A stretch of 64,000 nt of DNA, from positions 3,239,461 to 3,303,460 of the forward strand of contig BFEA01000018.1 in NCBI GenBank assembly GCA_003427395.1, in the 5' to 3' direction. The stretch is from Chara braunii (Eukaryota; Plantae; Charophyceae). Below the pieces are notes generated by a model, which worked only from the letters and a program-made list of their open reading frames with translations, was not told where the DNA came from and did not search any database. Shown here piece after piece: positions 9,576-62,744 of this stretch (positions are counted from its first letter, which is position 1; each line of letters begins with the position of its first letter). The position numbers and the translations under genes were made by a program.

Positions 9576-11018
9576 ATGCCAATGGACGACGGCAACGCAG
9601 CCTCCCCTAGGGTGATTGTTAGTATTCCCGCCGCTTTTCCTTTCTTTCCTAATCACACCCACCCCGAAGCTTGGTTGGAAGCCGTCCAAGCTCAAGGATA
9701 TAGCGCGGAAGATCTCCCGCGCGTCATCACCTTGCTGCTTCGCAACACGGCGCATTATTGGTTTAGGAAACACAGATGGGTAGATTGGAACACCTTCAAG
9801 CAAGCGTTCTTGGCCAGATTTGATACGGTCAGCGAAGACGCCACTTGGTATGTGCTCAAAACTCGACCACAAGAACCAGGGGAATTGCTGCCTGACTTCG
9901 TGGATCACGTTGGACAAATTAGGGCGAGATGAAAATTTCGCCCGAGATTTGCTCATCGATCATCTACGAAATCCGGCGCTAAAAGCTAAGTTGCAGAAAA
10001 AGGTTCCCCCTAAAACGAACCAGTTGTCCGCTATTAAACCAAATCGCTCGAGTTAGACCTGACGGATACAAAGAAGTATATCAGTCAGGGAGACGAAGAC
10101 ATTAGAAATATGATTCAAGATGTAGCGGCGAAACGACGATCGTGGTTACGAGCCGTAGGACGATTCTATCCCCGGCCTGATCATGACCTTCCTGGAGGAT
10201 TCGCCTCTGATATCCCGCCAGCTCTTTCTCCCCCTCCTCCGACTCTCTCAATGAACCAACAGGTAGCAACTGTTAAACCCAGAAGCTCCCAGGATCCTGC
10301 CTCTATGTCCATAACAAATATGCACTTGGCACAGATGTTCCATACAACTACTGCCAAGCAATCTGAATGGATGAGCAATCTGGTCCAAATACAGGCGGCT
10401 CACATGGATCGAATGAAACAGACTATGAGCAGGCTAATTAAGCCCAACCCGGCTCCTGCTCGATCTACCCCTGCATCGTTCCCACTTTTGCCTGCCCCGC
10501 CTGCACCTGGACATGCGCCACAGTTCCCTCATGCAGCTAATTTGACAGGGAAGATCGAGTGTTACAATTGCAAACAGCACGGGCATTTTGTCCGGGACTG
10601 TCCGCAGCCAAAACGAAATCAGCCCCCACCTGTCGCAGCCCCCGTAGCTCTAAATCAAGGACGAGTAGCTGCACTAATGGATACGGCCCGAAATGAGGAG
10701 ATCATTGCGTACGCTCCTGAGCGATCTTTCCCCTCAATAGCAGTTGCATCGACCTCGGGGACTTCTTCTTCCGAAGATGCTGACGTGGTTGATCCGGTCG
10801 AATACCTTCATCTCGCCGGCATGGTCGGAGCAATCCGACCGGCCCAGGACGATCTTGAATGGGTCGAACGCGAATCTAACCCTGGACCACAGTTTCGGAC
10901 GGGAAAAATTGATGTACTACGAACGTTTAAGCAACTGGATATTCGCGTTCCGGTCCCAGTAGGACATTTGCTCACCATATCCGAAGATGCAAATAACAAG
11001 ATGTTGCAACAATGTTAG
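9576..11018 (+). pseudogene. gag: gag (capsid plus CCHC zinc knuckle), disrupted
   Basis: ORF pieces 9492-9932, 9820-10056 and 10110-11018 carry gag motifs and are separated by stops and a frameshift. Confidence 0.8.
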
Positions 11019-11174
11019 AAGAATCAAAAACGCTTTACATACCAGCGCATACAACGAATGTTGAAAAAGAAGAAGGAAGAAGGGTCAGAAGGTGTAGCAC
11101 CACCCGAACTCGAAGTTGGTGAACCCGAAGCGGCGTGAGTAGCTACGATTTCTTTAGCTGAGAAATATCATTTC

Positions 11175-12467
11175 GTGCGAGTTCGACCAGTGTTATGGAA
11201 AAGTGCAGAATGTGATTGTGAAGTATGGGGCAAACCTTTTAACGCCCTCATCGATACTGGCTCCTCTGCGGTCGCCATATCATTAAATACGGTGAAAATA
11301 ACGGGACGACTCAACTCGATTCTCCCTCAATATGGCAAAGACAATTACGTCTCTGCTGACAAGGAAGCAATGAATATCGTAGGAGTCATTGAGAATGTGG
11401 TCGTGAAAGTTGGACGAGTACACGTCCTCGTTAACGCCTTGGTCATAGATGTGCACTCATATTCGGTATTGTTGGGACTGCCTTGGGCAATGGCGGTAGG
11501 TGCCCGCATGCATTTCGATTCCAAACAGTTGGTGCTTACGCAAACAGGTGGAAAGCCCCAGACAGTTCCGTTGCGGATTTCTACCCAAGCAGTAAAAAGG
11601 AATCCTAACTCTGGTCGGATAGGGATGATTCAAGGTCCCGATCACGAGGAATTTCCATCTCCGGATGATAGTAGCGGATCCGAGGAGCAGGAGTGCGAAG
11701 AAGAGATGCCTAGTGAAAGTGAATGGAAACACTTAGTCGAACTTTTCGAGCACGAATCTCCAGAGGAATTTCGGATGGTTCCCAGAACCACACGAACTTT
11801 CCACTTGAGTCTGGAAGATAACACGCTCGTGCATGCGAGAGCCCAGGTCAGTTCCTCGACCTTTCTCGGGAAACCCATCTTGCAAATATTTGACCTAGCG
11901 GACGATTTGGAACCCCCTCGCATTTTGTACGAAGGAACACTTTCCCTCCAAGCACGCTATCAACAGGTGAAACAATACCTTGATGTTTCTGTTTCCCCTC
12001 CAAGGTCGCTACTTACAACAGGAGCGACCATCGCTCTGATAAAACGGAAAGTTGAAGTTCCCGTCGACGATGTGCCCAATCTAATGCAGGAAATGGTGGA
12101 TTTAATAGGACTAACCGTGGAAGAAACTACGGCTGATTCGGAAACTGACGCCGAAGTTGAAGAAACCGAGATGATTAGCCCTGCCGAATCCCAGATGATT
12201 GCGATTGTATTTTCTGTTCGCACTAGCAGCTCTATTTTCTCTAGCGTCCATGACCGACGAAATCAACCTGATGATTGGATCGACATGCCTCTTGAGATAC
12301 CCGATCGACCGACAGTCACTCTCCCGAATCACGTTGTAGGGCCAAACCCCGGTAGACTTTCGAGCCTTGGTCGACCCCACTACGGGTCCCAGTTGGCTCG
12401 GCCCGCCCACGCTCATGCTCAGGGCGCGGGCCGTTCGTCCCGAGGTCACCCCCACGTAGTGCTTTGA
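11175..12467 (+). pseudogene. Retroviral-type aspartic protease plus acidic linker (5' part of pol), truncated
   Basis: FNALIDTGSSAVAIS ... VLLGLPW retropepsin signature; no RT motifs downstream. Confidence 0.8.
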
Positions 12468-15400
12468 GATGGATGGGGGTGGGCCATCGCGCGAGAGAGC
12501 TTTGACATTGGGGATGTAGCTCAGCCCTCACGTCGGGTGGTAGTCTCGCTGGTCATTCCGTAGCGCCGAATCTTTTTTGATTTTTTGTTGTGTTCTCAAG
12601 CAATTGCTCCTTCCAATACGCAGGCGGTCCAGGGGTTCTTTGAGAGTTTTCTTCTTTCGTGCGTAGGCTAAGCGTCATCCTTAGGCCGCACACCATTTCC
12701 CTAAACCTTGTGTTCCTATGGCGTCATCGGGGTGCGGCGAAGCCGTCCTCCCCCTCGCCTCTATGCACCCCTTGAGCCTCATAATTCACACTCAACTTAT
12801 TGAAGCAGGCCCCTTAGTCTTTTCGGGACCTTTACATGCATGCACACATGACCTCACATTTCCCTTGGCAAGATTGTACGCCCTTCCCTCATTCGCACTC
12901 CAATCTCAAGCGCAAAGGTCATTTTCATGGGTCGGCTTTATGTTAAGGGTCCCTTAACCCCTTTGTCCTTCTTCCCTTTTCATTTTGATGCCATATTCCT
13001 CCCGGCCCTATTTCGCTCAAGGCATCCTTAGCCTTCACTTACCTGCACAATCCCACACGAGCAAAGATCCATACAATCCTCCGTTGGGGGTCAACACATA
13101 GCCCTTCCCACATGTCTATCCTTTTCATACTCTTTGGCTTTTCTTTGTTCCCTTTCCTTGCTCAATCAGCCCATCTTCTTCTCATAGTCATGCAGTCGGG
13201 GAAATGGTTGAGTCAGCTGAAATTGCTTTTACTTATACTCAATCTTCCCTTTTACATAATGCGATGAAAAATCTTATGAAATAATGTCATTATTATGGTT
13301 CAATGTCTTCAAGTTTTTTTTGGTAAAAAAAAATATGATTTTTAATATGCGGTTACCATTCCCCTAGTGTTCTTGTAGAGAACTTGAAGTTATCTCTTGC
13401 TAACTATTTTCGTTTTTATTGAATATGATAATATAAAATAAAAGATATGAAGTTATGTTAGCTATTCAAACAGAATAGGTACGAAATCTACCGACGTAAG
13501 ATATACTATGTTTAAAAGAAATGCAAAAAATATTAACTTGGGCAAGAAAAACTTTATTTTTATTGACAATATAATACTTTTTCATAGCAAAGCTCAATAT
13601 ATTAATTAATATCGGTAGTAAATAAATATTTTCAATCCAACATTTTGGGATTATTAAATTACGCATTCTCTTACTTATTCCCCTCCTCCTTTCTTTTTTA
13701 ATTCTGTACCTTTTTTTTTTTTAACAATAATATATCAAATTTGTAACTTCATGTTTATCCTATGAAAATTATTATATTGTCTATTAAATTATGCAAAAAT
13801 ATTTCTTTACGACAAATGACACGATATGTTACCCATTCTCACAAGACAACAAAACATTTTTCGTCAAAATCGGTGTTAAAGACGTTGCGTCAAGTACTTC
13901 AAAATTCTTCACATAATTTTTTTATCGCTTTATATTAACTCAAAGTTCGAGATGTCTTTACTATCATGCTTATGTCGTCGATGATGAAATAGCCCTATGC
14001 TTTTTCATAACATAGTTTATACTGTCATAAAACATTTTGTTTCTGTCAGTTCTTACTTAGACAAAATTTCAGATATCAAGCCATGTAACTCACATTGTTC
14101 AATATGTTGGACTTTGTCATCAACAGTCCAAAAATAACGAAAACGTTATTATGTCATAATACAATATTACAAAGTGTTTTAGTTGTTTCACATTTTACAA
14201 TACTTTCCAGTGTTACTATAGTAAGTAATTAAGCCATAGTATGAAATAGTTACGAATGTTATGCAAAAAAAATTATAACGTTCTCACACTGTTTCATTTA
14301 TCATCTTTGAACGGGAAGTCAAAAGATCGCAGAAGTGTATTTTTTTATAGGATATATAATTTTTTGAAAGGTTGAAACCTTTCCACCACATTTTCTTAGT
14401 ATGTAATTGGAATAGTTTTATAACAGATGTTTTTTTACCTACTTAAAGACGAAGTTGAAAACATTAATTCATGTTTGTAATCCGAGAAAAATAATTACGA
14501 AGTTTATTAATACAAAACTTTCACTGCTTCAATAGAGCGTAAAGACTGTCAACATAGTAAAATTTGATACGTAGTTTCTTTTATTCAAACATAACTTTAT
14601 TGAGCTCGTAACTACCCTTTTGTAGGTAATGTTAATAATCCCATGTTTTTTTGTTTATGCTAAGATAAAAAAACACAAAATAAATGTAGAGCGATATATA
14701 TCACTTTAGAAAAAAATATTGTTGATGTAATAATTTTTTTCGTTTATATTAATACAAAGTTCAAAGTATTAATCCGTATGAGTAACCCAATATATTATCA
14801 TAACATAATTTCTTTAAATCTTATATGGGAGAGGGGAGGGGAGGGGAGGGGGCAAGGCGGATAGGGAAGGTTTTTTTTTATGTAATTAACTTGGATATTG
14901 CACGCCAAATTTTTGGTTTTTTTCTTGGATAATACGGAGGTAAGACGAACAGAACCGACACAAAGGCTGCCAAAACAGATGACCCTACGATCACTATATT
15001 GCATAACGATCCCGTTGTAAAAGAGTCGTCAACTTTATTTTTGTTGAGTCTATGGAAAACTCTACTTTGCCTTACAAAAATGATTCATGACCATCAATTA
15101 GGGTTTTTTTGTATCCACCAAAGTAAGGTCTGAAGCGAACACCGATTGAACATGAAAATGAGGAATAACCCTTTAAGCCGACCTCTTCGCCTTCGACTTT
15201 CATATTTGGTCAAACTATCTTCGTTACACTGCAAAGAAATGAAAATTTGTGAGGTGCAATTTGGTCAGGACTGAAAAAAAGAAAGATCTAGGTCAAAGCC
15301 TAGATCAGATGGTGGACCTATTAATTGTTGGAATACAAACCAGAGTACCCACGAAATTAAAAAATATCTTAATTATCCGGGCCAATGAGCTTGAAGATTG

Positions 15401-15529
15401 TTTATTTTTTTCACAAGCACGCACATACAACCCAGGTAAGCACTCTCACCAAATCTATCAAATTGGTTTCATAGTAGTTCACTGGTACCCCGTATGATTA
15501 ACCATTTCTTCCAATTTTACATATGGTAC

Positions 15530-16016
15530 GATGCTAGACCATTATGCTCAAAAATTTATATAAGATGTATTAATTATATACAAACAAAAAGCACAATAAC
15601 TCTTTTCTTCTTTGGGCATGCGACTAGACCATCCTTCTTAGAAACAATGCATAATCTTCCCAGAACTGGTTAATAGCTAACTTTTGAATATTTTTTAGTC
15701 TTTGACTTGGATATGGGCATGGGCTGAACCATTCTGCTTATAAATAATGTTCATCTTGCCCATATTACTTCCAATTGTACTCTTAAGTTTATTTTTTTTC
15801 TTAGTGATGTAACTTAAGACATACCATTCTGCTTAGAAACAATGTTTAACTATCTCTTCGCATACAATATGAGAAACATTGTTTAACTTTCCTCCAAAAT
15901 TTTGTCTCAGTCATTCTGCTTAGAAATCATGCTCGGCCATTTTTGGAAGAAGAAAGGAAAAAAAAAAAAAAAAAGGAAGTTGGGTTATTTTGCTTAAAAA
16001 AAATGTTCAACCATTT

Positions 16017-16053
<37 letters not shown>

Positions 16054-16162
16054 GATAAGGAAGTAGGTTCATTCTGCTTAGAAACAATATCCAACTTAAG
16101 TGATAAACCCAATAAGAAACCAGTTGACCCAAGTCATTCTGCTTAGAAACAATGTCTAGTCT
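15530..16162 (-). repeat. Hairpin array A: 8 interspaced copies of a 20-nt core (plus strand cattctgcttagaaacaatg) with variable complementary flanks
   Basis: Cores start at 15540, 15630, 15730, 15825, 15912, 15986, 16070 and 16135 (spacing 65-100 bp). Spacers are unrelated. Flanks pair, e.g. tgaac/gttca, gttgggt/gttcaac, aagtaggtt/atccaactt. Confidence 0.8.
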
Positions 16163-16337
16163 CACAATATCAGACAAACAAACCTAAAACATAAATATAG
16201 CAATCAGACCATTTAAGTCTAACTAAGTTGTGAAAATAAACAACAATCATAGAGTTGCATGCATACATATGAGAAAAACTAGAGAGATGCAATGATAAGG
16301 GTATAGTGGGCACACACAAAGATAAAAATTATACTTG

Positions 16338-16720
16338 TAATTTCTCTGCCTACAGCACCTTGCCTAGGTTTCGGTAGAACTCCCGCAATCTGTCGGGTAA
16401 CTTACCACAAAGGCGTTGACATAAATTACGGTTTACAATCCCCGCCTGTTGTCGTCCTCTCTGAACCAAATAAATTAGACTTGTAGCACGAAAGACAGAG
16501 AGAGAAATCGTTTAGCCTCTCGTGACATAAAAAAGGTTCACTCAGATTCGCGTAAGAAGGTCTTGAGGCCATTCACTCCTGAGGGTCCGCATATTAATAA
16601 CCAATCACAAATTGTAGCGCTCAAATGAGCGGGTCACAACAAGATTTAAAAAAAGGACGCAATGATGGAGGTACTAACAGACTGCGTTCGAACAGAACTC
16701 GAGATGACCTTTTTAAACAT
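16338..16720 (-). ncRNA. Conserved structured non-coding module, copy A (homologous to 20865-21190)
   Basis: Collinear shared motifs with copy B: aatt(t)ctct(g/a)cc..gg(t/c)aga, ct(c/t)cc(g/a)caatc, caatccc..tcctct..gaacc, ggttca(a)ctcag..cttgag..cctgag. Helices appear preserved despite sequence divergence. Confidence 0.55.
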
Positions 16721-16830
16721 AATACTCAAATAGTTAGCAATAACAGTCGAGTATGCAGCAACAATTTCGCGTCACTCAATTAGTAGTCAATTATTCTTGT
16801 CGCTATAGTGTGCTTAGTGAAGTTGGTCGT

Positions 16831-17405
16831 TGTGGAGCACATCGGTCCCGCAAGGGGACCCTCTCGACCGCGTCATACAGGGTTTCGCAGGACTTTGTTG
16901 CAGAGCGTTGTCGCTTCGGTCAACTGTTCTAGTCATACCTCTCACGAACCCCTACGACAGGATAGGGTGATGCAAGGTACAACTTACCTCCACCCGTGAG
17001 AGTTGTCGCAATCCTTTAGGTGGACGTATCCTCATCGAGCTATTGAACCTTGTATGAAAGTTTTTCGTACGAAATAGCAGATGTGGTTCAAACAAGGGCA
17101 TTTCTCGTTCGTTATAGCATAGGGGGTACGTGAGGTTAACGCCCACGTCGACCCCGTGCACGAATCGTCGGTCGAGGCGCTGATCTCTTGAACACGATCT
17201 TATGTCGGTTGACTAGGACGGTCAAGTCTAACCACCAAAGAATTGTGTTGGTGTCACGCGCGAGAGTCTAAATAGATATCGCGACAACATAAACTTTATC
17301 ATTTCGACCAACCATGCATAAATATGCAAGCGATCGCAATCGTGGCGTACTATGTGGTTCTCATGAACACGCGATTCTCAATGATTTTGAGGGTTACTTT
17401 CGACA
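16831..17405 (-). mobile_element. Short (~575 bp) LTR of element B, related to the termini of the 5.2-kb LTRs of element C
   Basis: Starts tgtggagcacatcgg (cf. tgtcgagcgtatcgg at 21680) and ends gagggttactttcgaca (cf. aagggtttctgctccgata at 26887). It shares the block acaactta..gttgtc..tagg..cgtatcc..agcta..tgaaagttttt with 21910-21990 and 29440-29520. Confidence 0.7.
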
Positions 17406-17875
17406 CTCAAATGTCAGATGACACGCGTCTTGAGGGGTTGATCCCTCGATGCTAGACAATTGCAAATGCGATTATGAGAGTTACCCTCTTCTGCAATCTG
17501 CGAAGAGGGGTAGACGAGTTTCGGCCCTTAGTGGCAGCCAAGCGCTCCTAACCTTGAAAGTCGGGTTCCATCTTCGGAGGCCTGGAAACAGGTCAAGAGG
17601 TTTGACTTTGACGGTCGCGACCGGACCTCAACGCCCAACTGTAAAAGTCTAAGAAGCAGAAATGAAAGGGCATCTGTCTTTTCTCTCGACACAAATTTGT
17701 TCAATCCTTACGTACTATCAAAGTAGACTGTGCGTCTACACAAAATATAAATATAACGAGGTTATAAAATACGAGGCGATCATTCTCACAATCACAGTTT
17801 GATTTTTTTCAAAATATACACATGATTACAGATGAAGTTAAATCTGAATTTTGATTCACAAAATATACTTGCAAT

Positions 17876-18639
17876 TAGGGTTGCCGGCGTGCCGAACGCC
17901 CGAACCCGAACGCCTGAACGTTCGCCACCCACTATCGACGCGTTCAGCCGAACGCGGATCCCTAAAAAAAAAAAAAATAATAAAAAATAATAAAAAAATT
18001 AAAAAAGTTGAAAAAAAAATATATCTTATGTAAAAGAATAAACTAAATAATATTTGCTTTAACGTTTTATTCAAATTTTTTACCAAATTTAAAATAAAAA
18101 TTAAATACTAAAAATAAATAATAATAATAAAAATTAAAAAAATAAAACGATAATTAAATTATTGAGTGAACGAGCATGTTTTTGACACCTCCATCTTTGG
18201 CGATTTTTCATTTTGTTTTGGCTGTGATAAATGCCATGAAAATTTATATTTGTGTATCTTACATAATAGAGAATCTAAGAATAAATTTTCAAAAAGTAAT
18301 AAATTGTTTTGTGCCCCGAAATAAAGAAAAAACAAAAAGTGTAAAGAAAAAAAAAACAAATTTGTGAGTGGGCAAGCAAGTTTTGACACCACCACCTTTG
18401 AGGATTTTTCAGTTTTTTCTGGCTGAACAGAACGATTTCAAAATTAATCGGGGGATACCTTACATCACAAAGAACGCACAATACAAAATTCAAAAAAATA
18501 TATATATATGTTTGGGTATCAAAATAATTGTTTGCGGGGTTCGAACCCTTTCAAGTTCGGGCCCCGTACGGGAACCCGAACGCCCGAACGTTCGGGGGTC
18601 AGCTTAGGGGGCCTTCGTACGTTCGGCCTAGTAACCATG
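17876..18639. mobile_element. hAT-superfamily MITE (764 bp) with perfect 8-bp TSD
   Basis: TSD cttgcaat at 17868-17875 and 18640-18647; imperfect TIRs tagggttgc / gtaaccatg; subterminal ccgaac repeats at both ends; AT-rich non-coding interior. Confidence 0.9.
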
Positions 18640-19089
18640 CTTGCAATCTCACCAAAGATTTAACATCGACATACCACACACTACACGAGGTCAACTTCAA
18701 CCACTCTATGCGCTCACACCCGTTGCCTTATTTACACAAGCCCCAACCTTTGTCCAACTCTCCAAAAGAACACACTCAGTCTCTTTTTAAATAAACACTT
18801 GATAAAAATCCGGATAACAAAAAAACAAAAAATCCAATTTAACGCATAATGGCTAAGGTCTTAGGTTGAGTAGCGAGAATGAGTTAGAGTTGAATAGCGG
18901 AAACTGACTTGTTATCAAAAGAAAACGGAAAATGATCATCGTAGGACCGACTTGAAGCTAGTAAAGCCATAAAATAATCTGAATGAAAATGACATGCAAC
19001 ACAACACAGGTCAGTGCCCAAGCTATGTGTCAGTGAGTATGAAATACTCCTACCTTCCTACCTTACCTGTCATATCTGTCTGAAAATGC

Positions 19090-19510
19090 ATGAAATTTCG
19101 GAAGTATCTCTTCTAAGCAAGAGTAAACTGTTAGATTTTCGAAGTTATAAAATAGTATAACTCCTTCAGAAGTAAGGAAGTTTCGGCAACGCTTCCGAAA
19201 GGAAACATGTCCTTACATCATTTATATGAGATTGAATATGAAATTTAAAGGCGATCTTTGATTTTACAGTATCAAATTTTGTCTAACTCCCTGAATCACG
19301 AAAACATTGGGCAGCATCTCCTTTAGAGTATAAATCGGATATAAAGTCAAGATAAATTTAAAATTTTGTAAACACAAAATTTAACTAACTCCTTGGTTTT
19401 GCAAAATTTTTGGCATCACTTCCCTTAGCGGAATTGTTTTTTCAAAATTTATAGAAAGCCAAGTATGAGAAATAAACTTTTAAAATGCAAAAAATGAACT
19501 AACTCCTATA
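19090..19510. repeat. Degenerate ~100-125-bp periodic repeat (taactcc ... ttyggca..ytcc)
   Basis: taactcc at 19158, 19284, 19386 and 19500; a second motif near 19096, 19181, 19307 and 19409. Confidence 0.6.
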
Positions 19511-19675
19511 GTTTCAGCACGTGGCGAGCATTTAAAACAACTACCTATCAAAGATAAGATTCATAACAGGTCGAACTCACACTCAACCACATGCCAGTTC
19601 ATACCACAATGAGTAAGTACTCTGATCGAAACCTTTAGTTCTTCTTCTCATAAATAATTAGTTGTCTCTCGGTTA

Positions 19676-19803
19676 GATAAACCCCAGTACCCTTTCTTAC
19701 ATATGGTATAAGAAAGGTAACCCTTGGCTTCGTATACATAACCTCAATATCCTTCCTTACATATGGCGTAAGAAATTTAACCATCGTCTTTGTATACATA
19801 AAC
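19676..19803. repeat. 60-bp tandem duplication, each unit with a hairpin around catatgg
   Basis: cctttctta-catatggta-taagaaagg, with a second copy at 19751-19780. Confidence 0.8.
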
Positions 19804-19839
19804 GGACGACGTAACTATTTATCTCTTCATTAGGTAGTT

Positions 19840-20626
19840 AACTAGACTAAATCGAAGTCACATTGTCTAGTTTTGTCAAGTGTTTAATATCCAATTTATG
19901 TTACACTCAAGCGTTTTATGAACCTTTTATCTTTTAAAGACTAGGGTTGAGCTAAACCGAAGCCATATTGCTCAGTCCGCCTAATGTTACATTATTATAT
20001 TCTTAATTAAATATTTTCTTTCTTTTGTGATAAGCTGTAGTCAGACAAAGTTGAAGCCACATTATCTGAGTAGGTTGGTTCAATAATTGAAGTATAATAT
20101 ATTTATATAGGAAGTCATATTTTCATATTCATATTTTATGTGCTCGACCTTAAAATAAGCCAAAAGGAAGTCACATTGCTTAGTCATCAGTCCAAACCTC
20201 CTTCATAAAAAATAAGTAGTTGAATCTGATAAAAGTCACCTTACCTTACTTTTAAACTCTTTCAACACGCAAATCACCACAAGAACAACAACTAGACCTG
20301 ACCAAAGCCATATTGTTCGGTAAGAGTAAGGAATATAACGACATAGCATAGTCAACTAGGTTAAATCGAAGTTGCATTGCCCAGCTGCACGAATAACAAC
20401 TTATTGAGGTATGGCAATCAAACATGACCGTAGCCACATTGTTTGATTTTCAAAAATACGAACAATACAACAACCAAGTCTGAGCAAAGCCACATTGTTT
20501 GGTTGTAAATACGACACATCAAGAAATATTACAATAACTAAACCTGATCGAAGCTACATTTTCTAGTTGCAGAGGAAACAAAGTAAACAAAGAGGTCAAG
20601 CGAAACTGAAGTCACATTATCTGACC
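19840..20626 (-). repeat. Hairpin array B: 12 interspaced stem-loops with a conserved 17-nt core (plus strand ~ytrayCGAAGyCACATT) and covarying stems
   Basis: Cores start at 19848, 19953, 20047, 20105, 20161, 20226, 20298, 20362, 20424, 20480, 20544 and 20602. Stems include aactagac/gtctagtt, tgagc/gctca, taagc/gctta, aatcaaac/gtttgatt, caaccaagt/gtttggttg and ggtcaagc/atctgacc. Spacers are unique. Confidence 0.9.
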
Positions 20627-20864
20627 CTTTGGGGACCCAATTAATTCAAACGAAATTACCTTTCTCCCACCTTTTCCTCAATTCATCTCCTTCAACCTGA
20701 ATTTCAAGCAATAGAATAATATGAATTTCAGAAACCGTTCTTTTTAAATTAAGTTCATAATAAAGTAAAATTCATAGGGATGCACACATACAAAGCAATC
20801 AGCGTACAGAGATGTACTGATAAGGGATTAGTGGATTCACACAAGTCATAAGTGGTATACCTGA

Positions 20865-21190
20865 CAATTCTCTACCTCCATAACTCATCCCGAGTCGTGG
20901 CAGAGCTTCCACAATCGCAGGGTGGACCTTCCATAAGATCTTGTTGCGGTTTTGTTGGTTGCAATCCCACGTGTCGCCTTCCTCTTCGAACCTAAGATTA
21001 AGGAAAGTTGGACTCTCAAGATACAGGAGGGGTTCAACTCAGTCTCACGAGAAATGACCTTGAGATCCCAATGCACCTGAGAGTTCCACAATGGTGGCAA
21101 AAAGTATAATACGCAGAGTAAACTGCACTCTGACAACCTTCAAGTCGCAGTTGTAATCCCTCTTTCAGAGTGTGATCACTCCCTTCAAAT
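20865..21190 (-). ncRNA. Conserved structured non-coding module, copy B
   Basis: Homologous to 16338-16720 (see motifs there); helices ctctacc/ggcagag, gaacc/ggttc and ctcag/ctgag. Confidence 0.55.
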
Positions 21191-21679
21191 CACAATATTT
21201 CCTCCTCTGGCCAAATTGAGTTCACGCAGCCGGAAAAAAACACGTTGAAATAAAGCACACTCTCTGTACTATATTTGAATCGTAGACAGACGAACAGGGA
21301 AAAAAAAATGTATCGTTAGTTGGTTCCACAACACAGCTGTAGTAACTACGATGCACGACGGTCCGCAGCAAACATACAGCAACGACAGCAAAAAGCTCTG
21401 GAATAACACAATCAAGAAAACCCAACAATAATGTCAGGTGACAACACAACAATTGTGTTGGCAGAAAGACTCAGTTTTGTGAGAAAAAACAGAGATAGCA
21501 CAACCGAAAAAAAAAAAAAAAAAAAAAAANNNNNNNNNNNNNNNNNNNNNNNNNNNNNNNNNNNNNNNNNNNNNNNNNNNNNNNNNNNNNNNNNNNNNNN
21601 NNNAAAAAAAAAAAAAAAAAAAAAAAAAAGTGGTAACACTGTAGAAGGACATAGCGATATAGGAACCCAACAATCTTTG

Positions 21680-24600
21680 TGTCGAGCGTATCGGCCATCG
21701 CCTTTTTCTCGCGAAGAGGTAGGAACCCTCCCAGCCATATTACGCAGGAGTAAAACAAAATAAAATTAAGGAGACAACTTGGGGACGACGCATAATTAGC
21801 ACCCCGAACCGTCGAGACGGGTGTGGTCGCGTCGTCCCTTTGTCGTTCTAGCCGGGGGCGCCAACTGTACTTCCCACAGTCCCCTACAACCGGATAGGTT
21901 CCCACGGGGCACAACTTACTTCCCTAATAGGTTGTCACCACCCTTAGGGGCGTATCCCTACCAAGCTACTGACCCACGTGTGAAAGTTTTTAAATGCAAT
22001 TGCAGAGGTAGGTCAGTCGAGGGCGTTTGCTCGCTCGCTGTAGTATAGGTACGCGCGGTTAAAACGCCTATTCAACCCTGATGTCGCTCGTAAGTACGAA
22101 GTGTACGCTGGTCGACAAGGACGGTCTCAACCAAGCGTAAACCCCCTTTGTCCCTTTAAACATTAGTCAAAAGAAAGCTATAACACCACAGATAGTTACG
22201 TCAAAATGAGTTACCGTAATCAACATGAATATATATCCAATCTGAAATGATAACTGAAAGAATCAAAATCATCATTAAATACATCCAATAACACAAGATC
22301 AAAATAAAATCCGACCATTTTGGGTCGAACTCCATAAAAACCATACAGCCGCCAACAAGGAGTTAACTTTCGACAATAACATAGATGCAACCGACAAAGT
22401 AGTCGAACAACCTCCGTTTTGACTTGATGAGATGTGTTACCAAACTTATTCATTCTAACCCACCGCCAACTTAAGATTAGGCATGCACACATTTGTCTCC
22501 ATACATTTCTAATATTTTTGGATGACAGATTGCTTTGCAGATGATTCTTTATCAGGTGCATTGCTTGAAGTGTTGCATGACTCTCCATTTAGAAAGTGGT
22601 TTGGGGTACTTCTTCTCCTCGCCCGACCACAAGATTGAGATCTCAGAAGTCGGGTCGTCTCCACCGAATCGGCAAAGTACCCCTCCATAGAACGGTCCAC
22701 TCTGGGTCGATACCAGGGTCGGCTTCTAAAGCAGCGAACCCCGCCCCATATACATTCCTTGAAAGAGAGGTGTTCACCGGAATTATTTTTGAGTTGTTAT
22801 CACCCTCCCCTGGTTAAGGTCATTTAGACGAAAAGAGTCAGAGATGATAAAGATGAGAATCATTTGGACAGGTGTAGGTAGATAAGGTCATTCGAGATAG
22901 AAAGGGTCAATCCCTGGGAAAAGCTAAGACTGTTTGACCTTATCTACCATATTTCAATCGAATTCATTCTACGGTACACACAAAATTAACATTTTTCAAA
23001 ACAACAAATCATTTTTGGCGTGCATGCAAGTAAAATACAAAAGGAAGATAATTTTTTCGTCTTTCCTCAAATAGGCATAATCAATCTCCTTTGCAAACAT
23101 CCTTCTAACTACCTGCACACACTTTAACAACCACAGGTGCAGAAAATTCAGCAACCCATACTCCCGTCAGATCTCACTTTCCACATGTATGATCACACAT
23201 GTGTTACTTAACCTTTTCTTCAGAATGTTCAAAAGAAACAGGGTCAAGCAAAGTGTGGGTTCACACAGGTGTGAAAAGGAATCCAAGTAAATCAACTGAC
23301 CGACCTTGAATGAAGTGGTGTCGAACACGCTCTTTCTCATTCAAGAAAGCCAAGTAGAAGTATACTTGTCATCGGAAAAAACCGCAGCCCCGAGGTAAGT
23401 CCCGGGCCGACAAATGGCCTCAATTCACTCTCCACTCACACGTCCCGTACGTGGTGGCCCCAAGTGTGAAAACGGTGAGCTGCACATGCTTCAAAAAAAC
23501 TTCACGGGTCCCACGCCAGTCCGAACTGGTCCCAGGTGATCCCAAATGGTCCCTCACTTTTCCTTCCACCACCTTTATGGCGACAACCTCCAAAACCACT
23601 TCTACCAAGCCTCAAACAAAAAACAATAAAGTTTGAGAGTGTCGATTCCGCCTGTCCTACTCACATGCCCCACTGGTCCAAAAAAATCTCATTAGGCCAA
23701 TGTCAATGGCCCTGCCACCGTCGACACGCATGACGTGTTGTTCCACCTTGACAAGCTTGGTCCCACTAATGAACTATCGCCGATACGTCTAGTGTCGCCT
23801 ATCGTACCGTCGCAATAGTCACATTGCAATTTCCTCCCCTTCACCGGCGTTGACGGCGAGCCCTTCGACGTACCAAAAATATCCAACACTCTCTCTCCAC
23901 TTAGTGTTGCTCGACAAACCCAAATTTCGGCAGCATAATGCTGCAAAAATGGTTGTCGTTGACGCTAAAACATTTCGGCAATATTTTCCCTGAAAAGTGG
24001 AAAAACAGTCTGCCGAGGTCCGTCCGCCGGTACCACCGCCAATGAAGTCTTGATGTCCCGCTGTTGTCGCTAAAAAACACCGTCAAACTAATAAAATTTT
24101 GGGCCTTGGACAAAATCGAGGTCCAAAACAGCCTCCTGTCGTGCCGCTTTGGTCCCGTAGAGTCTTGAGTGCCGCTCCATTGGACCAGCACCAGCTAGGG
24201 GAAGTGGAGCAGAGTGCTCCCTACCTCGGTTATGGCTGCCTTGCTCCTCTCGTGCTCCACTGCAGACCTCCGACCTCCTCCCACGTTGCCTCTGGCAGCT
24301 CCTCCAGCAATCTAGTAGCACTCAAGTGTGTTTGTCACACACTGGCAGCACGAGTGTGTTCTATGTGGCAGTTGGGGACAACTGCCTGTTTTATAATGGC
24401 TGAGGAGGTTTGGACGTCACTCCAACCACCAGGCAAAATCGCGGGCTCTCGGTAAAGGCTAATTGTGGTCGCACGACAACCACAGCCTTAGTGAGGGCAG
24501 TTTCTTTAACTGCCCTATTTTTATTTTTCTTTTCTTTTCCTCAGCTATCTCGGAATTTTACGAGATAGTTGAGATCATGGCATTTCTAAAACTGCTTTTC

Positions 24601-26887
24601 TTTTATTTTTATGATAAGGGGGTTGGAGAGATACAACCCCTTTCATTTTGATGTATTTGGATCCGTTTCCCAAAGCAGATACATCGGGGAAAAAGTTGTA
24701 TTTGGCTTTTTCCTCTATGACCCTTCCATTTTCAGGCTCCCTCTAAAAACGAGACCAGTTCCCTTTGGCAGTTTCAGTAACATCTCGTGAGGACAAGTGT
24801 CCTCACAAGAATGCTGCAAAAATAATAAACCCTAAAGAAAAATAAAACTACATCTAACTGCACACGCCTGACCCGTGTCTTGGCCAAATGCATGCTTGTT
24901 GGAACTAACAGCCTTTTCCCCTTTTCCCTCTGCCCTCCGCCCGAAAACAGGGAGTGTAGTTGTCATGCTGGGAACAACCTCCAATTTTCCCTTTTTCTCC
25001 CTCTCCAACTCCCTCAGCTTCTCCAACTCACGGCCACAGGTATTTGTTTCAGAACGAAGTGGGAGTCATTGTGCTCTCATACAATCTCAAAGACTGTTTT
25101 TTCCTATGAGGCAATGACCTCGTTTTGCTTTTGTTTTTTATTTATTTATTTACTTATTTATTTTTTTACTCGTTTCAACCTCCCCCCTCGTTTTTTTCCT
25201 TGCTGCCTGTGCCCCAACGGCCACGAAATGAGGGGGGGAACAAACAGGACCAAAAAAAAAAAAACGAAAAGCAGCAACCACTTTANNNNNNNNNNNNNNN
25301 NNNNNNNNNNNNNNNNNNNNNNNNNNNNNNNNNNNNNNNNNNNNNNNNNNNNNNNNNNNNNNNNNNNNNNNNNNNNNNNNNNNNNNNNNNNNNNNNNNNN
25401 NNNNNNNNNNNNNNNNNNNNNNNNNNNNNNNNNNNNNNNNNNNNNNNNNNNNNNNNNNNNNNNNNNNNNNNNNNNNNNNNNNNNNNNNNNNNNNNNNNNN
25501 NNNNNNNNNNNNNNNNNNNNNNNNNNNNNNNNNNNNNNNNNNNNNNNNNNNNNNNNNNNNNNNNNNNNNNNNNNNNNNNNNNNNNNNNNNNNNNNNNNNN
25601 NNNNNNNNNNNNNNNNNNNNNNNNNNNNNNNNNNNNNNNNNNNNNNNNNNNNNNNNNNNNNNNNNNNNNNNNNNNNNNNNNNNNNNNNNNNNNNNNNNNN
25701 NNNNNNNNNNNNNNNNNNNNNNNNNNNNNNNNNNNNNNNNNNNNNNNNNNNNNNNNNNNNNNNNNNNNNNNNNNNNNNNNNNNNNNNNNNNNNNNNNNNN
25801 NNNNNNNNNNNNNNNNNNNNNNNNNNNNNNNNNNNNNNNNNNNNNNNNNNNNNNNNNNNNNNNNNNNNNNNNNNNNNNNNNNNNNNNNNNNNNNNNNNNN
25901 NNNNNNNNNNNNNNNNNNNNNNNNNNNNNNNNNNNNNNNNNNNNNNNNNNNNNNNNNNNNNNNNNNNNNNNNNNNNNNNNNTTTTTTTTTTAAGTTGATG
26001 ATGCCGCTGGCATAAGCCAACGGCTACAAGAGTCAGCGTCTCACTTTGTTGATGCCTCCCGTCCCTACCTGAGTGCAAAACCGAGTTTGATTCCCACAGA
26101 GGAATCGAAAAACAAAATTTGGACTACTTCTCTGTTTATGCGTGTCATTCTTGCGCAGGGGCCATGCTATTCGCACGACTTTTTTTTCAACCGCGAGATC
26201 TGAAGATTTCGCGGTCGAAATTGACCGCGCCTCCATTCTACCCCAATGTGCAACTCCAAAAGGAGCCCAAGTAGGGTTTCGCCGGGGTCGATCCGGTATC
26301 CGTCAGGTGAGAATCTGGCATGTTATCCTACTGGGCTAACTCCTATTTCACACTAGATAATATTGAAGGGCTATGCCCAGCAGGAACAACCAGCACATAG
26401 TCAGTAGGCCTCCGCCTGCCCTCGCCTATTCTCTGACCCCTTGAGACAAACGTGCACCTATCCTCGTAGGGTAGAAGGCATGTCGCCCTGACATACCGCT
26501 ATCCGTTCCAAATCCCGGCGAGGCAACCCTTTAAAATATCAAGTCTGAATCTATACTTTCGTGTTGTGAGATAATGCGGTCATCTTTTTTTGCCTCGTTA
26601 AACCTTGAATCGTGTGGCTATCATTATTTTAGGTAGAACAGGTTTCTATTTTAGCATTTCCACTCCCGCTCCCCTTTGCGGCCCTGCTAGAAATTGTCGA
26701 CTACCGTCATACACAATCGTCCGGACTGAGGTTCAAAAAAATTATAGTCTCTCGGTCATTGGTTAATCTGAATGAACTTCTGGCAGACGTCAATCTCATC
26801 AAGTCCTTCAATTCAACGAAAAAGTCGGACAACGTCCGATATTGAAAAACCTAAGCAAATACCCTTGTAAGGGTTTCTGCTCCGATA
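21680..26887 (-). repeat. 3' LTR of element C (contains N gap 25286-25981)
   Basis: tgtcgagcg ... ctccgata; aligns along its sequenced length with 29395-34613. Confidence 0.85.
26114..26169 (-). pseudogene. U6: U6 snRNA 3'-half fragment embedded in the LTR
   Basis: The reverse complement reads TAGCATGGCCCCTGCGCAAGAATGACACGCATAAACAGAGAAGTAGTCCAAATTTT, matching the plant U6 3' half (AGC triad, ISL, 3' U tail). The 5' half and ACAGAGA box are missing. Confidence 0.9.
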
Positions 26888-26902
26888 GTATTCCCAGACC
26901 CC
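26888..26902 (-). promoter_or_regulatory. Putative polypurine tract of element C
   Basis: Minus strand ggggtctgggaatac directly abuts the 3' LTR; it is only moderately purine-rich. Confidence 0.4.
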
Positions 26903-27054
26903 ATTGAATTACTTCCACGTTTTTCATCATTTACTTTAAAGGTCAGGATTCGTATGGGAAAATTCATGTAAAAGGAACGATTACAGTACACAATAATTCC
27001 AACAATTGTTCAGAACTAAGTTGGGACTTTTCCACCAACATACAACAATACAAC

Positions 27055-27270
27055 AACAAAACTGGATTTAGCCTCTAGAAACCTTAACTTAATACAACAA
27101 AATTGAATTTAGCCTCTAGAAGCCTTAACTCAATACAACAAAACCGAATTTAGTTGTCAGAAGCCTTAACTCAATACAACTCATAAGTGGATGAAATGAT
27201 ACAAAATTTTGCCTCTGGCAAGCCTTATCCAAACTTGGACGCATGTCTAGCCCCTGAAAACCTTCAGTTT
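27055..27270 (-). repeat. Hairpin array C: three 41-bp tandem units plus two diverged units, 17-nt core tagcctctagaagcctt
   Basis: Cores at 27069, 27110 and 27151, diverged at ~27209 and ~27248. Flanks ttgaatt/aactcaa and ccgaatt/aactcaa pair fully on the minus strand using G-U. Confidence 0.75.
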
Positions 27271-28603
27271 AGAGGAACTTTTTTTAAATCATCCCAGCAT
27301 CATCCCACTGGCGGCCACTCAAAAGTTTTTCTCTCTGAATGGTACCGGAAGCTCTTCGACGAGTTCCAAAATGAAATTCATTTGGTTGATACCTTTGTTG
27401 TACCTTAGTATAACTCAAGTGAGTCAGGAATAACCCCTGACAGACCGCTCAAGCGTATCAACCTCCTGGAGTTGTTCAGACATAGTCTGAAAGACCCTTT
27501 TAGAGAGAAACTGTTTGTTCAAAGTTCTTCGTTCAAGCTTGAAACTCACCTCACTCCACATAAGTTATAATGCCCGTTATTTACGAACACCTTGTGATAG
27601 GCGTCGAGGAGTGGTGTAATCCACTTAACGGGATAGCATCTCTACATCAAGCCCCGATTTAGATTCGAGTCTGACCACATTCCTTTCGATTCCAGTGTTG
27701 TGATCTTGTCAATCCCCTGTACATAGAGTAGGACAACCCCACCTCATACAACCGAGGTTGACCAGACTTCGATTACAGAGATAAGGTGACTCTGTTTGAA
27801 ACGAGGTTAGGTGATCACTTCTCCCATCATAGCAAACAATAGTCGCCTACTTCTACATGCAGCGTTTCAGCAAGGCCTCAACACCTCCCTCCTTTTCAAT
27901 GATAGTGTAGTCTTTCTCCCTTAAATCACACAGGATTCGGAAGACAACATCCAACTACGGACCAGGAGCATAGATCCGGCACGAGCCTCACTACCATCGA
28001 GACAACTCACAAATCCATCAGAAATTTATCATAACATGATAACAGGCGTATGATCGTTTCATTCACGACACAAAAAGTTAAACATTATATTCAAAATCAA
28101 CTGTAAACAGTACAATTCACAACAATTCACAATGAACGCTTTCACATAGAATTTCATAAGGATTTTTGGTTCATCATCCCCCAATCACAACGAGGGTTCA
28201 TCCATATCACACGAAAAATGAACTTAGGAAAAAACGCTTTATAAAATATTGCATAAAATCAATAATCGATTGATAATAATCCAAAATTCAACGAGTAATA
28301 ACAATCGGCTGAACCTTGAAAAATATGAGCGTAGATCATGAGATCTGCAAGACTTAAAAATAATGCCTCAAAAATAAAATAACAGAGCCAAGACCATTAT
28401 AACTCCTCAATTTTTCCCACATGCGATCAATAAGCACATCTCTGATAAATTTGTCTTCCTTCTTAGCTGGGAAGATGGACACATTATTCCAATTTACACA
28501 GACTTCGTCCTCTCCTCTATTCACAATCCCGTTTTCAATATCAAGGCGTCTGCAAAATTTTATCTTATGACTTTAAATACCACAGTACACACATCTTCAG
28601 GGC

Positions 28604-29080
28604 TTATAATGAATGTATTTTCTTCATGTAATCCCTCTGATTCGAACATTCACCTTGTTCCTGTATGTTGATGCAGTGACTATTTTTATCATCATGTAGT
28701 GATGCAGTGACCATAGCTTGAGTCCCTTCACCTCGTTGAGTCAAGTTCCAAGCGACCCTCTCAACCTTAGTAAGCTCACGAGGTCGTTCTAACTGATCGG
28801 ACTCAGTCTGCTCTTTACTCTTTAATTCCACTATCTTCCTTTTCCCCTTACGATCCCTATTTTTAGATGATTCTGAGAACTTCGTAGCCATTAGTTTTTC
28901 AAACTCGCTCCAAGTCTTAGAGACTCTTAAAAGAAGCCGAATATCGGATTTCAACCTTTCATCAATGAAATTCAAAACAAAAAAGAATTTGTGTTGCTCC
29001 TCCCAAAACATTAACATTGCTAAGTTCCAGAATGCTTGCAGAAACTCAACAACCTCGCTACCTCCGAAGAGAGGAGCCAT
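28604..29080 (-). pseudogene. gag: gag N-terminal remnant of element C
   Basis: APLFGGSEVVEFLQAF..W..K..TWSEFEKLMATKF resembles Retrotrans_gag; it lies ~300 bp downstream of the PBS. Confidence 0.65.
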
Positions 29081-29374
29081 ATGAGTAAAAACTCCTTTTC
29101 GCCATCGTGTCGCCCTGCAGAAGGCATAAAATTATATTAATAATCGAACAACTGAAGTAATAAAATAATATTTTTTTGAGATAGAACTTAAACCTTCATC
29201 AATATTTTTAAAAATCACAATATCTGTAAATCTAATGCAATAATTAAAAAAATTATAAGAAATTTTAAACTTAATTTATGTATTATATAAACAAATATTT
29301 ATAATTCAATATTAATCATCAAAATTGAATTATCTCAGTGTCGTTCGAACAGGGACAACGGTAGTTTGTCGTTA

Positions 29375-29392
29375 TCCCCGGCAATGACACCA
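29375..29392 (-). promoter_or_regulatory. Primer-binding site complementary to tRNA-Asp
   Basis: Minus strand TGGTGTCATTGCCGGGGA versus the Athila-type TGGCGCCGTTGCCGGGGA (3 transitions); it starts 2 nt after the LTR end. Confidence 0.85.
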
Positions 29393-32121
29393 CCTGTCAA
29401 GCGCATCGGCCCCCGACTTTTTCTCACGAAGAGGGGGGGCACAACTTGCTTCCCCAAGGGGTTGTCACCACCCTTAGGGGCGTATTCCTACTGAGCTACT
29501 GACCTATGTGTGAAAGTTTTTAAATGCAACTGCAGAGGTAGGTCAGCCCATGGCGTTTGGTCGCTGACTTAATATAGGTACGAGCGGTTAAAACGCCTAT
29601 TGAACCCGAACGTCGCTCGTCCGTTAGAGCGCTGATCTCCGAAGTACGACGCGTACGTTGATCGATAAGGACGGTCTCAACAAAGTGTGAAACCCCCTTG
29701 TCTCTTTAAACACTAATAAAAAGAAAGCTATAACAACCACACATAGTTATATTAAAATGAGTCATCGTAATCAACATGAATATATATCCAATCTGAAATG
29801 ATAATCGAAGGAATCAAAATCATGATTAGATACATCCAATAACACAATATCAAAATAAACTCCGACCACCCTGGGTCGAACTCTACAAAAATCATACAAC
29901 CGTCAACAAGGAGTTGACTTTCAACAATACCATACAGCCGCCAACAAGGAGTTGACTTTCAACAATAACATAGATGCAACCGACAAAGTAGTCGGACAAC
30001 CTCCGTTTTGACTTGATGAGATACGCTGCCAAAGTTATTTATTTCAACCCACCGCCGACTTAAGATTAGACATGCACACACTTGTCTCCATACATTTTTA
30101 ATTTATTTGGATGACAGGCTGCTTTGCGGATGATTCCTGATTAGGTGCATTGCTTGCAATGTTGCATGTCTCTCCGTCTAGGAAGTGGTATTGGGTACTC
30201 CTCCTCGTACGAGCACAAGACTCGGATCTCAGAAGTCGGGTCGTCTCCACCGAATCGGTAAAGTATCTCTCCGTAGAACGGTCCACTCTGTCTCGATAAC
30301 AAGGTCGACTCTTAAAGCAACGAACCCCGCCCCATATGCTTCCTTGAAAAAGAGAACGAGTTCACCGCAAGTTTTTTTTAGTTGTTCTCGTTTTTTCCTG
30401 GTTAAGGTAATTTAGACGAAAAGAGTCAGAGATGATAGAGAATATCAATAATTTTGACAGGTATAGGTAGATAAGGTCATTCGGGATAGAAAGGGTCAAT
30501 CCTTGGGAAAAGCTAAGTCGATTTGACCTTATCTGCCATATTTCAATCGAATTCATTCTACGGTACACACATAATTAACGTTTTTCAAAATAACAAATCG
30601 TTTTTGGCATGCAGGTATGTGAAAAACAAAAGGAAGACAATAATTTTATTTTTTCTCAAATAGGCATAATCAATCTCCTTTGCAAGCATCCTTCTAACTA
30701 CCAATACACACAAAAACAACCACAGTCCAGAAAATCCAACAACTAATAATCTAGTCAGATCTCACTTTCCACATGCATGACCACACACGCTTTGTTCAAC
30801 CTTTTCTTCTGAACGTTCAAAACAAACAGGGTCAAGCAAAGGTTCACACAAGTGTGAAAAGGAATCTGAGTCAATCAATTGACCGACCTTGAATAAAGTG
30901 GTGCTGAATGCGCGCTGGCTCACTTAAGAAAGCTAAGTAGAAATATATTCGTCGCTGAAGAAAACCGTAGTCCCGAGGTAAGTCCTGACCGACAAATGGC
31001 CTCAATTCACCCTCCACTCGCACGTCTCGTACGTGGTGGCCCAAGTGTGAAGGTGAGCCGCACACGCTCCAAAAAAATTCATAAGTCTCACGTTAGTCCC
31101 TACTGGTCCCAGGTGGTTCTAAATGGTCCCGCACTATTCCTTCCAGCACCTGATGACGACAACCGTCAAAACCACTTCTACCAAGCCTCAAATAAAAAAC
31201 AATAAAGCCCGAGAGTGTTGATTCTCTCGACACCGTCCGTCCTACTCACATGCCCCGCTGGTCCCATAAGATCTCACTAAGCCAATGTCAATGGCCTTGC
31301 TACCGCTGACTCGCACATACAAAAAAAAACGACGTGTCGTTCCACCTTGACAAGCCTGGTCCAACCAACAAGCTATCATTGATACCTCTAGTGTCACCTG
31401 CTGCACCGCCTCAATAATCACGGTGTAATTTTTTCCCCTTCACCAGCGTTGACGGCGAGCCTTTTGATGTACCAAACATATCCAGCACTCTCCCTCCACT
31501 TAGTGCTGCCCGACGAACCCCTATTTCGGCGGCATAACACTGCAAAAATGATTGTCGTTGATGCCAAAAAAATTTGGCAACATTTTCCCTCAAAAGTAGG
31601 AAAACAGTCTGTCGAGGTCTGCCCGTTGGTACTACTTCCAATGAAGTTTTGATATCCCGCCATTGCCGCTAAAAACCACCATCAAATTAATGAAATTTTA
31701 GTCCCTGGACAAAATCAAGTTCCAAAACAGCTTCCTGTCGTGCCGCCTTGGTCCCGCAGAGTCCTGAGTGCCGCTCCACTGGACCAGCACCAGCTAGGGG
31801 AAGTGGAGCAGAGTGCTCCCTACCTCGGCTATGGGTCCCTTGCTCCTCTCGCGCTCCACTGCAGACCTCCGGCGTCCTCCCACATTGCCTCTGGCAGCTC
31901 CTCCAACAACCTAGCAGCACTAAAGTGTGTTTGTCACACACTGGCAACACGAATGTTTTCTATGTGGCATTTAGGGACAGTTGTCTGTTTTATAATGGCT
32001 GAGGAGGGTTGGACGTTACTCCAACCACGAGGCAAAACGCGGGTTCTTAGTGAGCCCTTGATTTGCCCAAGATCAAAGGCTAACTGTAGCCGCACAACAG
32101 CCTTTGACTTAGTGGGGGCAG

Positions 32122-32249
32122 GTTTTTTTTTTTTTTTTTTTAATGCTTCAATCTATTCGTGGGGAGCAGCACGTGTTGGGAACCGCGCCCAACGTCCCTT
32201 ATAATTGGAATACATCGATGATTGATGAAAAGTTCAAATGATTAAGGAA
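32122..32249 (-). mobile_element. Short poly(A)-tailed retroposed insertion with 12-bp TSD in the 5' LTR
   Basis: TSD tagtgggggcag at 32110-32121 and 32250-32261; a T19 run at the left end; the site is empty in the other LTR (~24489). Confidence 0.85.
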
Positions 32250-33822: not shown

Positions 33823-33878
33823 AAAATTTGGATTACTTCTCGGTTTATACGTATCATCCTTGCGCAGGGGCCATGCTA
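33823..33878 (-). pseudogene. U6: U6 snRNA 3'-half fragment embedded in the LTR (second copy)
   Basis: aaaatttggattacttctcggtttatacgtatcatccttgcgcaggggccatgcta is the reverse complement of the U6 3' half. Confidence 0.9.
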
Positions 33879-62523: not shown

Positions 62524-62600
62524 TGTCTTATATATATATTTTACAACCGGGGTTAAGGTGGATTATCACTCACAGTGTAATCAGTTAGGGGATTCTGCTG

Positions 62601-62652: not shown

Positions 62653-62744
62653 TTGTCACAGCCCTTCGTTTGTTGTCCTCTTCTCCCTCTCTGCCTACAG
62701 TTTACCGGGCAGCTCTGTTTGACCAACTTTGATGATATATATGT

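Follow-up and report, generated by a model that had tools for sequence, protein, structure and literature searches.

Interspaced hairpins with a shared loop motif and covarying stems in a degenerate LTR retrotransposon of Chara braunii: a candidate cis-acting array

Why would a decayed LTR retrotransposon of the charophyte Chara braunii hold a dozen short hairpins that share a loop motif but differ in their stems, and does this arrangement speak for a functional RNA, for a site in DNA, or for a by-product of mutation? We addressed this question in a window of 64,000 nucleotides (assembly GCA_003427395.1, contig BFEA01000018.1, forward-strand positions 3,239,461 to 3,303,460), where the window denotes the whole stretch of DNA analysed and coordinates are counted from its first letter. 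Between 19839 and 20627 we identified 12 units of 35 nt each, alignable without gaps in a single register and composed of a 9-nt arm, a 17-nt core, and a second 9-nt arm. The twelve copies and spacings reported in the original prediction were recovered exactly, with all 12 cores located (core ends at 19864, 19969, 20063, 20121, 20177, 20242, 20314, 20378, 20440, 20496, 20560, and 20618; core-to-core spacings of 105, 94, 58, 56, 65, 72, 64, 62, 56, 64, and 58). The stem sequences quoted there are present in the units as given, and ten of the 12 units are good, with units 4 and 6 being as weak as had been remarked (1/9 and 4/9 Watson-Crick pairs). The units are as follows:

19839-19873, minus strand: hairpin unit 1, with 8/9 Watson-Crick pairs and the arms aactagac/gtctagtt; 44.1 bits with covariance model R1, by construction
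19944-19978, minus strand: hairpin unit 2, from unit alignment, arm pairing, and model R1
20038-20072, minus strand: hairpin unit 3, from unit alignment, arm pairing, and model R1
20096-20130, minus strand: unit 4, which has the core, with unpaired arms (1/9)
20152-20186, minus strand: hairpin unit 5, with a short stem (taagc/gctta)
20217-20251, minus strand: unit 6, with a degenerate core and weak arms (4/9)
20289-20323, minus strand: hairpin unit 7, with a partly decayed stem
20353-20387, minus strand: hairpin unit 8, from unit alignment and arm pairing
20415-20449, minus strand: hairpin unit 9, with 8/9 pairs and the best fold of the units (z = -3.4)
20471-20505, minus strand: hairpin unit 10, from unit alignment and arm pairing
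20535-20569, minus strand: hairpin unit 11, from unit alignment and arm pairing
20593-20627, minus strand: hairpin unit 12, from unit alignment and arm pairing

A tandem repeat or satellite was considered for this region and rejected, since whole units are not copied head to tail. With a minimum score of 30, TRF returned no tandem array in 19840-20626, the 35-nt unit being all that recurs, and the 11 spacers, which are 21-70 nt long and A/T-rich, are no more alike than shuffled spacers (mean local alignment score of 5.65 vs 5.71 +/- 1.6), which bears out the earlier claim that they are mutually unrelated. The motif GAAGYCAYATT, allowing at most one mismatch, has 15 matches in the window compared with 4.25 +/- 1.9 expected, and 10 of these 15 fall inside the array, all of them on the plus strand.

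Family-specific repeat arrays, described as being of unknown function, are known from the internal non-coding regions of plant Ty3/gypsy elements (PMC11963269). The array described here resembles the "POL-3'LTR" arrays of Retand/Tat/Ogre elements in being a family-specific short repeat within a non-coding internal stretch of an LTR retrotransposon, and in that the repeat differs between related elements at a shared position. Conversely, the Retand/Tat/Ogre arrays consist of head-to-tail tandem units that TRF detects, whereas here only the 35-nt hairpin repeats, and the array lies downstream of the primer binding site (PBS) in a copy without pol. The terms "hairpin", "stem-loop", and "secondary structure" do not occur in PMC11963269.

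Within the unit, positions 7-17 of the core on the plus strand (GAAGYCACATT, 11 nt) are nearly invariant and positions 1-6 are variable. Identity between units is 66-69% in the core and 42-51% in the arms, which are 64% Watson-Crick paired. The fixed 17-nt core of the original prediction is thus constant in length, while uniformity of sequence is confined to these 11 nt. The consensus of the core contains a CpG and, as a matter of conjecture, may have decayed by transitions. An inner helix had also been proposed inside the core (UGGC/GUCA, capped by a UNCG tetraloop on the minus strand), and this did not hold up: the helix relies on the variable portion of the core, its closing C-G pair occurs in 4/12 units and its U-A pair in 6/12, it shows no covariation, and it is absent from the RNAalifold structure.

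The outer arms behave differently from the proposed inner helix. In a fixed register, arms form 69/108 Watson-Crick pairs with their own partners, compared with 49.5 +/- 4.7 for right arms exchanged at random between units, and a value of 69 pairs was not attained in any of 20000 permutations, so that flank pairing is far better than in the shuffled controls. With the register left free (RNAduplex), the duplex energy of own arms is -73.2 kcal/mol on the plus strand and -77.0 kcal/mol on the minus strand, compared with about -35 +/- 8.5 kcal/mol for permuted arms (p < 5e-5). Under the fixed structure, changes on both sides are found at 9/9 outer pairs (e.g. three pairs differ on both sides between units 9 and 1), paired cells amount to 73.1% vs 64.8 +/- 1.9 in column shuffles (matched in 0/500 shuffles), and a displacement of the partner by 1-3 columns leaves 17-47% paired. 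Moreover, RNAalifold predicted seven outer pairs unprompted, every one with double changes, and thereby recovered the outer stem that had been claimed.

Within this single array, the base pairs of the hairpin are kept by compensatory changes above the level of the controls; the test covers one decayed array whose units are paralogues, and because these share ancestry, the independent compensatory events are fewer than the cell counts imply. Substitutions in the arms are rich in transitions (ts/tv of 3.4-5.6 among the ten good units, vs 2.0 in the core), as expected of change via wobble intermediates. The covarying stems of individual units, together with the randomised spacers, agree with the proposal that stem sequences have been swapped with pairing kept, beyond plain satellite decay. 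The combination of an invariant loop motif, paired but divergent arms, and random spacers argues for a constraint on the loop sequence and on pairing rather than on the arm sequence, and the pairing of the arms would then appear to be maintained by selection.

Against a structured RNA, the stems are A/U-rich and close 17-nt loops, with a consensus energy of only -1.1 kcal/mol (RNAalifold), and folding of the whole 811-nt region is no better than that of its shuffles, whether on one strand (z = -0.30) or the other (z = +0.61). When hairpins of at least 8 pairs were scanned for generically, the 0.8-kb array held 4, and the 22 kb around it about 2.6 per kb. This excess is small; the distinctive feature of the array is that its hairpins are in register with a conserved core.

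These results bear directly on the main rival to a cis-acting hairpin array, namely that the stems are a mutational by-product, in which intra-strand template switching, at the stage of either reverse transcription or DNA replication, would repeatedly restore the arms of a quasi-palindromic repeat in a hypervariable non-coding internal region, without function or selection. Reverse transcriptases often switch templates. Template-switch mutations can create or keep hairpins and can yield several compensatory changes per event without selection (PMC8794818), and the commonest double change in the array does hit two adjacent pairs (columns 4/32 and 5/31). Family-specific tandem arrays are, in addition, common in the internal regions of plant Ty3/gypsy elements (PMC11963269), the pairing is symmetric between strands, and no expression was detected in the sampled poly-A RNA-seq, all of which would be compatible with such a by-product. 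Template switching would explain the paired arms, but not a nearly invariant 11-nt loop beside spacers randomised in sequence and length; it also sits poorly with hairpins held in register with a conserved core, though the excess of hairpins is small. We therefore regard it as unlikely, while giving it real weight.

The strand on which the pairing matters is not indicated by the pairs themselves. The original prediction had taken an excess of A.C mismatches as pointing to the minus strand, and the counts do not bear this out (13 A.C vs 10 G.T on the plus strand); a choice of strand from wobble pairs was rejected likewise, with 79 vs 82 paired cells and -73 vs -77 kcal/mol. Pairing is equally good on both strands and hence does not distinguish RNA from DNA. 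We presume that the relevant molecule is RNA rather than single-stranded cDNA.

A DNA-level element would be either a series of DNA sites bound by a protein, with an enhancer, insulator, or chromatin-targeting role, or a set of hairpins in single-stranded cDNA with a part in reverse transcription or integration. The strand symmetry of the pairing statistics fits this reading, as does the occurrence of the 11-nt motif twelve times in a single orientation at a spacing of 56-105 bp, and plant LTR elements are known to contain cis-regulatory repeats and palindromes, e.g. those in the LTRs of maize Sireviruses (Ty1/copia), which hold several short hairpin-capable palindromes per element (PMC4728375). 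However, a double-stranded binding site gives flanking arms no cause to covary, and the array is internal, downstream of the PBS, and not in U3. The likeness to Sireviruses lies in the presence of several short hairpin-capable units in one LTR retrotransposon (PMC4728375), and the pattern is otherwise the opposite one: Sirevirus palindromes are perfect (8+1+8), GC-rich, and located in the cis-regulatory region of the LTR, with a conserved arm sequence (CACCGGAC) around a single central base, whereas here the loop is conserved (11/17 nt), the arms differ yet pair, and the array is internal. On balance, an explanation at the level of DNA seems improbable to us.

The array is part of a degenerate LTR retrotransposon and lies on its sense strand. 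The features that define this element are the following:

21866-26885, minus strand: LTR B, with a length of 5.0 kb and about 84% identity to LTR C
29395-34611, minus strand: LTR C, 5.2 kb, with TG...CA on the minus strand
29380-29392, minus strand: PBS of element C, TGGTGTCATTGCC, 2 nt past the terminal CA of LTR C
21850-21863, minus strand: PBS-like sequence TGGCGCCCCCGGCT, 2 nt past the terminal CA of LTR B
26113-26173, minus strand: U6 3' fragment in LTR B (Rfam, 46-47 bits vs a gathering score of 44)
33822-33879, minus strand: U6 3' fragment in LTR C (Rfam, 46-47 bits vs a gathering score of 44)

On the minus strand, LTR C starts with TGGGAGCAG and ends in ...GACA, LTR B starts with TCGGAGCAG and ends in ...GTACA, and the two have diverged by about 16%. 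The PBS of element C differs from the tRNA-Asp/Asn PBS TGGCGCCGTTGCC at three positions, all of them transitions. Since a match with three mismatches is not rare in itself (22 in the window vs 10 expected), the weight of the call comes from its position at both LTR ends and from the transition-only differences. The CA ends of the LTRs, each followed by a tRNA-Asp/Asn-type PBS on the minus strand, place the array on the sense strand; this accords with the minus-strand orientation given to the retroelement in the original prediction, as do the U6 fragments and a weak gag-like ORF past the PBS of element C (28604-29080, minus strand; atlas score of 0.81-0.87), for which a homologue search returned nothing. 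The opposite orientation of the LTRs was considered and rejected, there being no purine tract before and no TGG after them on the plus strand.

Within the element, the array occupies the non-coding internal region, about 1.2 kb past the LTR end and its PBS, a distance to which an assembly gap must be added. This gap, a run of N (21530-21603) between two poly-A runs, separates the array from the PBS of LTR B. At about 130 nt downstream from that PBS, a 40-nt copy of a C-type LTR end (21680-21719, 85% identical to 29395-34) suggests past recombination or partial duplication. Both 5-kb LTRs also hold a cluster of at least five different strong hairpins (window 24540-24810 and 32298-32840), with 9-13-bp arms and 8-18-nt loops (e.g. 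24540-24573 and 32298-32333), which are kept between the LTR copies.

We found no similarity to gag or pol in 12400-36000, including by tblastn with 73 relatives of the protease ORF of the window, and ten ORFs from this region, looked up by exact match, were all absent from a protein collection. The polypurine tract before LTR B is weak (GGGGTCTGGGAA), and a target-site duplication is absent, as the flanks CACCG and CTTTG differ. The lack of gag and pol, the weak polypurine tract, and the unmatched flanks indicate that the element is non-autonomous and rearranged. The arrangement of LTR C, internal C (2.5 kb), LTR B, and internal B is a rearranged tandem, and the array described here, array B, sits in internal B. 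A gag-protease at 9609-12335 (plus strand) belongs to a different, truncated element; about 7 kb upstream of it, TTGGGCCGTTGCC (2660-2672, plus strand) is two mismatches from the tRNA-Asp/Asn PBS and may be its PBS, with a very long leader.

In ATHILA elements, the LTR end is followed by a short intervening sequence and then by the tRNA-Asp/Asn-type PBS, and the same order is seen at LTRs B and C. Assignment to the ATHILA lineage is suggested by this one feature, the PBS; unlike ATHILA, the region 12400-36000 has no gag, pol, or env-like ORF, and the LTRs here are 5 kb.

Is the array peculiar to this copy? Three neighbouring modules bear on this question:

19680-19801, minus strand: two 60-bp tandem units that adjoin the array, the first containing a hairpin with 9-bp arms around CATATGGTA
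20747-21190, minus strand: non-coding module between the PBS and the array
15530-16162, minus strand: array A, 8 copies with a different 20-nt core (CATTCTGCTTAGAAACAATG on the plus strand)

The second of the 60-bp units shows a matching layout by eye, and CATATGGTA is also found beside array A, at about 15519, so that it flanks both arrays. Between the first part of the non-coding module (20747-20995) and positions 16221-16470 in the neighbouring element A, identity is 65%, and 16221-17223 is colinear with 20747-22078 at 65-69% identity. This colinearity and the shared CATATGGTA identify array A, in a diverged element, as the positional homologue of array B. The core of array A itself ends in CATT...AATG, and unit-specific pairing of the flanks of array A is not significant (p = 0.23-0.35). 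At 15945-16053, array A is broken by runs of about 17 A and about 34 G.

A third short array (27040-27270) is made up of three 41-bp units, which are near-identical and carry no information on covariation. The array of element C lies about 155 nt before the 3' LTR, and the occurrence of a different core at the same position holds for arrays A and B only. Elsewhere in this neighbourhood, 17880-18625 is an insertion of about 0.75 kb with GC-rich inverted ends (ccgaacg... motifs) and an A-rich core, to whose right end (18500-18700) RNA-seq reads and contigs map in very large numbers (summed contig depth of up to about 1900); this heavy recruitment indicates that the insertion belongs to an abundant, expressed short element (MITE-like).

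Conversely, RNA depth on 19813-20822 was zero, at a likeness of at least 90%, in two raw poly-A RNA-seq runs, sampled at 6% and 12%, and in contig sets from two further runs, all of the same species. Reads did map to neighbouring repeats in those samples, and the zero depth is a lack of detection rather than proof of silence. The array copy is an old relic, silent in the sampled poly-A RNA-seq. Further away in the window, an unbroken ORF of 424 aa (48073-49347, plus strand) contains a full, Streptophyta-like DCP1 decapping domain (E = 1e-45) and is intronless, and thus represents a retrocopy or a compact gene.

We also looked for known families and further copies. Rfam, searched with the region and with the whole window, placed no family on the array (the best being mir-33, with 21.8 bits vs a gathering score of 50); elsewhere, at 62599-62654 (plus strand), there is a weak match to a type III hammerhead, 33.8 bits being below the gathering score of 48.5. 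Across the window, covariance model R1 recovers solely its 12 input units. Metagenome contigs scanned with a two-core pattern yielded 120 stretches; no R1 score exceeded 23 bits among the 80 loci listed, and with all of them at or below this value we consider them chance matches. Relatives of the gag-protease of the window, 70-89% identical, are encoded in GCA_003427395.1, and three Chara braunii loci chosen via such relatives neither contained an R1 unit nor matched 15000-35000 by BLAST. At 22459-22662 of a Chara braunii locus (L121), a 49-bp tandem repeat in 4 copies lies by a related gag gene.

The original prediction had also raised a processing array, in which hairpins would be cut and either spacers or hairpins freed as small RNAs (CRISPR/TIGR-like or miRNA/snoRNA-like). 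The layout of repeats and unique spacers recalls such systems, but little else does. Spacers are irregular in length (21-70 nt) and A/T-rich, and within the window they have no match beyond chance, the longest exact one being 12 nt (E >= 0.19). Dicer-like enzymes need stems longer than the 8-9 bp present here, and no Rfam family was placed on the array. Reads on the array are likewise zero, but poly-A libraries are uninformative for small RNAs. Processing into small RNAs is, on these grounds, very improbable.

One loop motif carried on differing stems is a familiar arrangement among packaging signals, including the GGG-loop series of alphaviruses, MS2-type packaging signals, and the GACG loops of gammaretroviruses, and a layout of multiple stem-loops gives multivalent binding of capsid or nucleocapsid. 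Retroviral Psi also lies downstream of the PBS, as does the array here; compared with known Psi regions, the twelve near-regular repeats are more numerous. In the literature searched, we found nothing comparable for plant or algal LTR elements, and no description of an LTR-retrotransposon array in which hairpins conserve their loop, covary in their stems, and are set apart by unrelated spacers.

We hypothesize that these hairpins act in cis in the genomic RNA of the element, as an array that binds a protein multivalently, a reading that we put forward tentatively and rate at somewhat below an even chance. A non-autonomous LTR retrotransposon with an ATHILA-type PBS would carry the array as a cis-acting element, and its genomic RNA, corresponding to the minus strand of the window, would fold into about a dozen independent stem-loops parted by unconstrained linkers. 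Each stem-loop would have an 8-9-bp stem of its own sequence and a shared loop motif, AAUGUGRCUUC, with about 6 variable nt, such that the array might serve as a multivalent platform on which a protein meets one single-stranded motif in many copies. As a non-autonomous element needs recognition by Gag/nucleocapsid supplied in trans, the likeliest partner would be the Gag/nucleocapsid of an autonomous element, acting in selective packaging, and a host export or stability factor could be an alternative partner.

The sister element A, with an array of diverged core at the homologous position, would count in favour of a cis-acting role, while the missing gag and pol, the non-significant pairing in array A, and the zero depth in the sampled poly-A RNA-seq count against a cis-acting RNA. 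The imperfection of the stems may in part reflect age: if the divergence of about 16% between the LTRs applied equally to the array, it would explain much of the quarter of the stems that is unpaired, and the stems of the active ancestor were then probably nearly perfect. More generally, multivalent hairpin arrays might act in the giant LTR elements of this charophyte as a tag by which non-autonomous elements are recognised in trans, for packaging or export, by the Gag of an autonomous partner, with one loop per family and unconstrained stems and linkers; we consider this extension speculative and, on present evidence, doubtful.

Packaging and export signals are essentially undefined in plant-lineage LTR retrotransposons. 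Non-autonomous elements make up much of large plant genomes, and how they are recognised by the proteins of autonomous elements is unclear. One loop motif on covarying stems is a concrete, short, and mutable candidate for such a signal. Should template switching instead prove to be the explanation, the array would be a clean natural case of this process maintaining the hairpins of a retroelement. Were the wider reading of a packaging or export tag to hold, it would mark the first time that a Psi-like or CTE-like signal is defined for an LTR retrotransposon of the plant lineage, and family-specific loops would constitute an addressing code between parasitic and autonomous elements.
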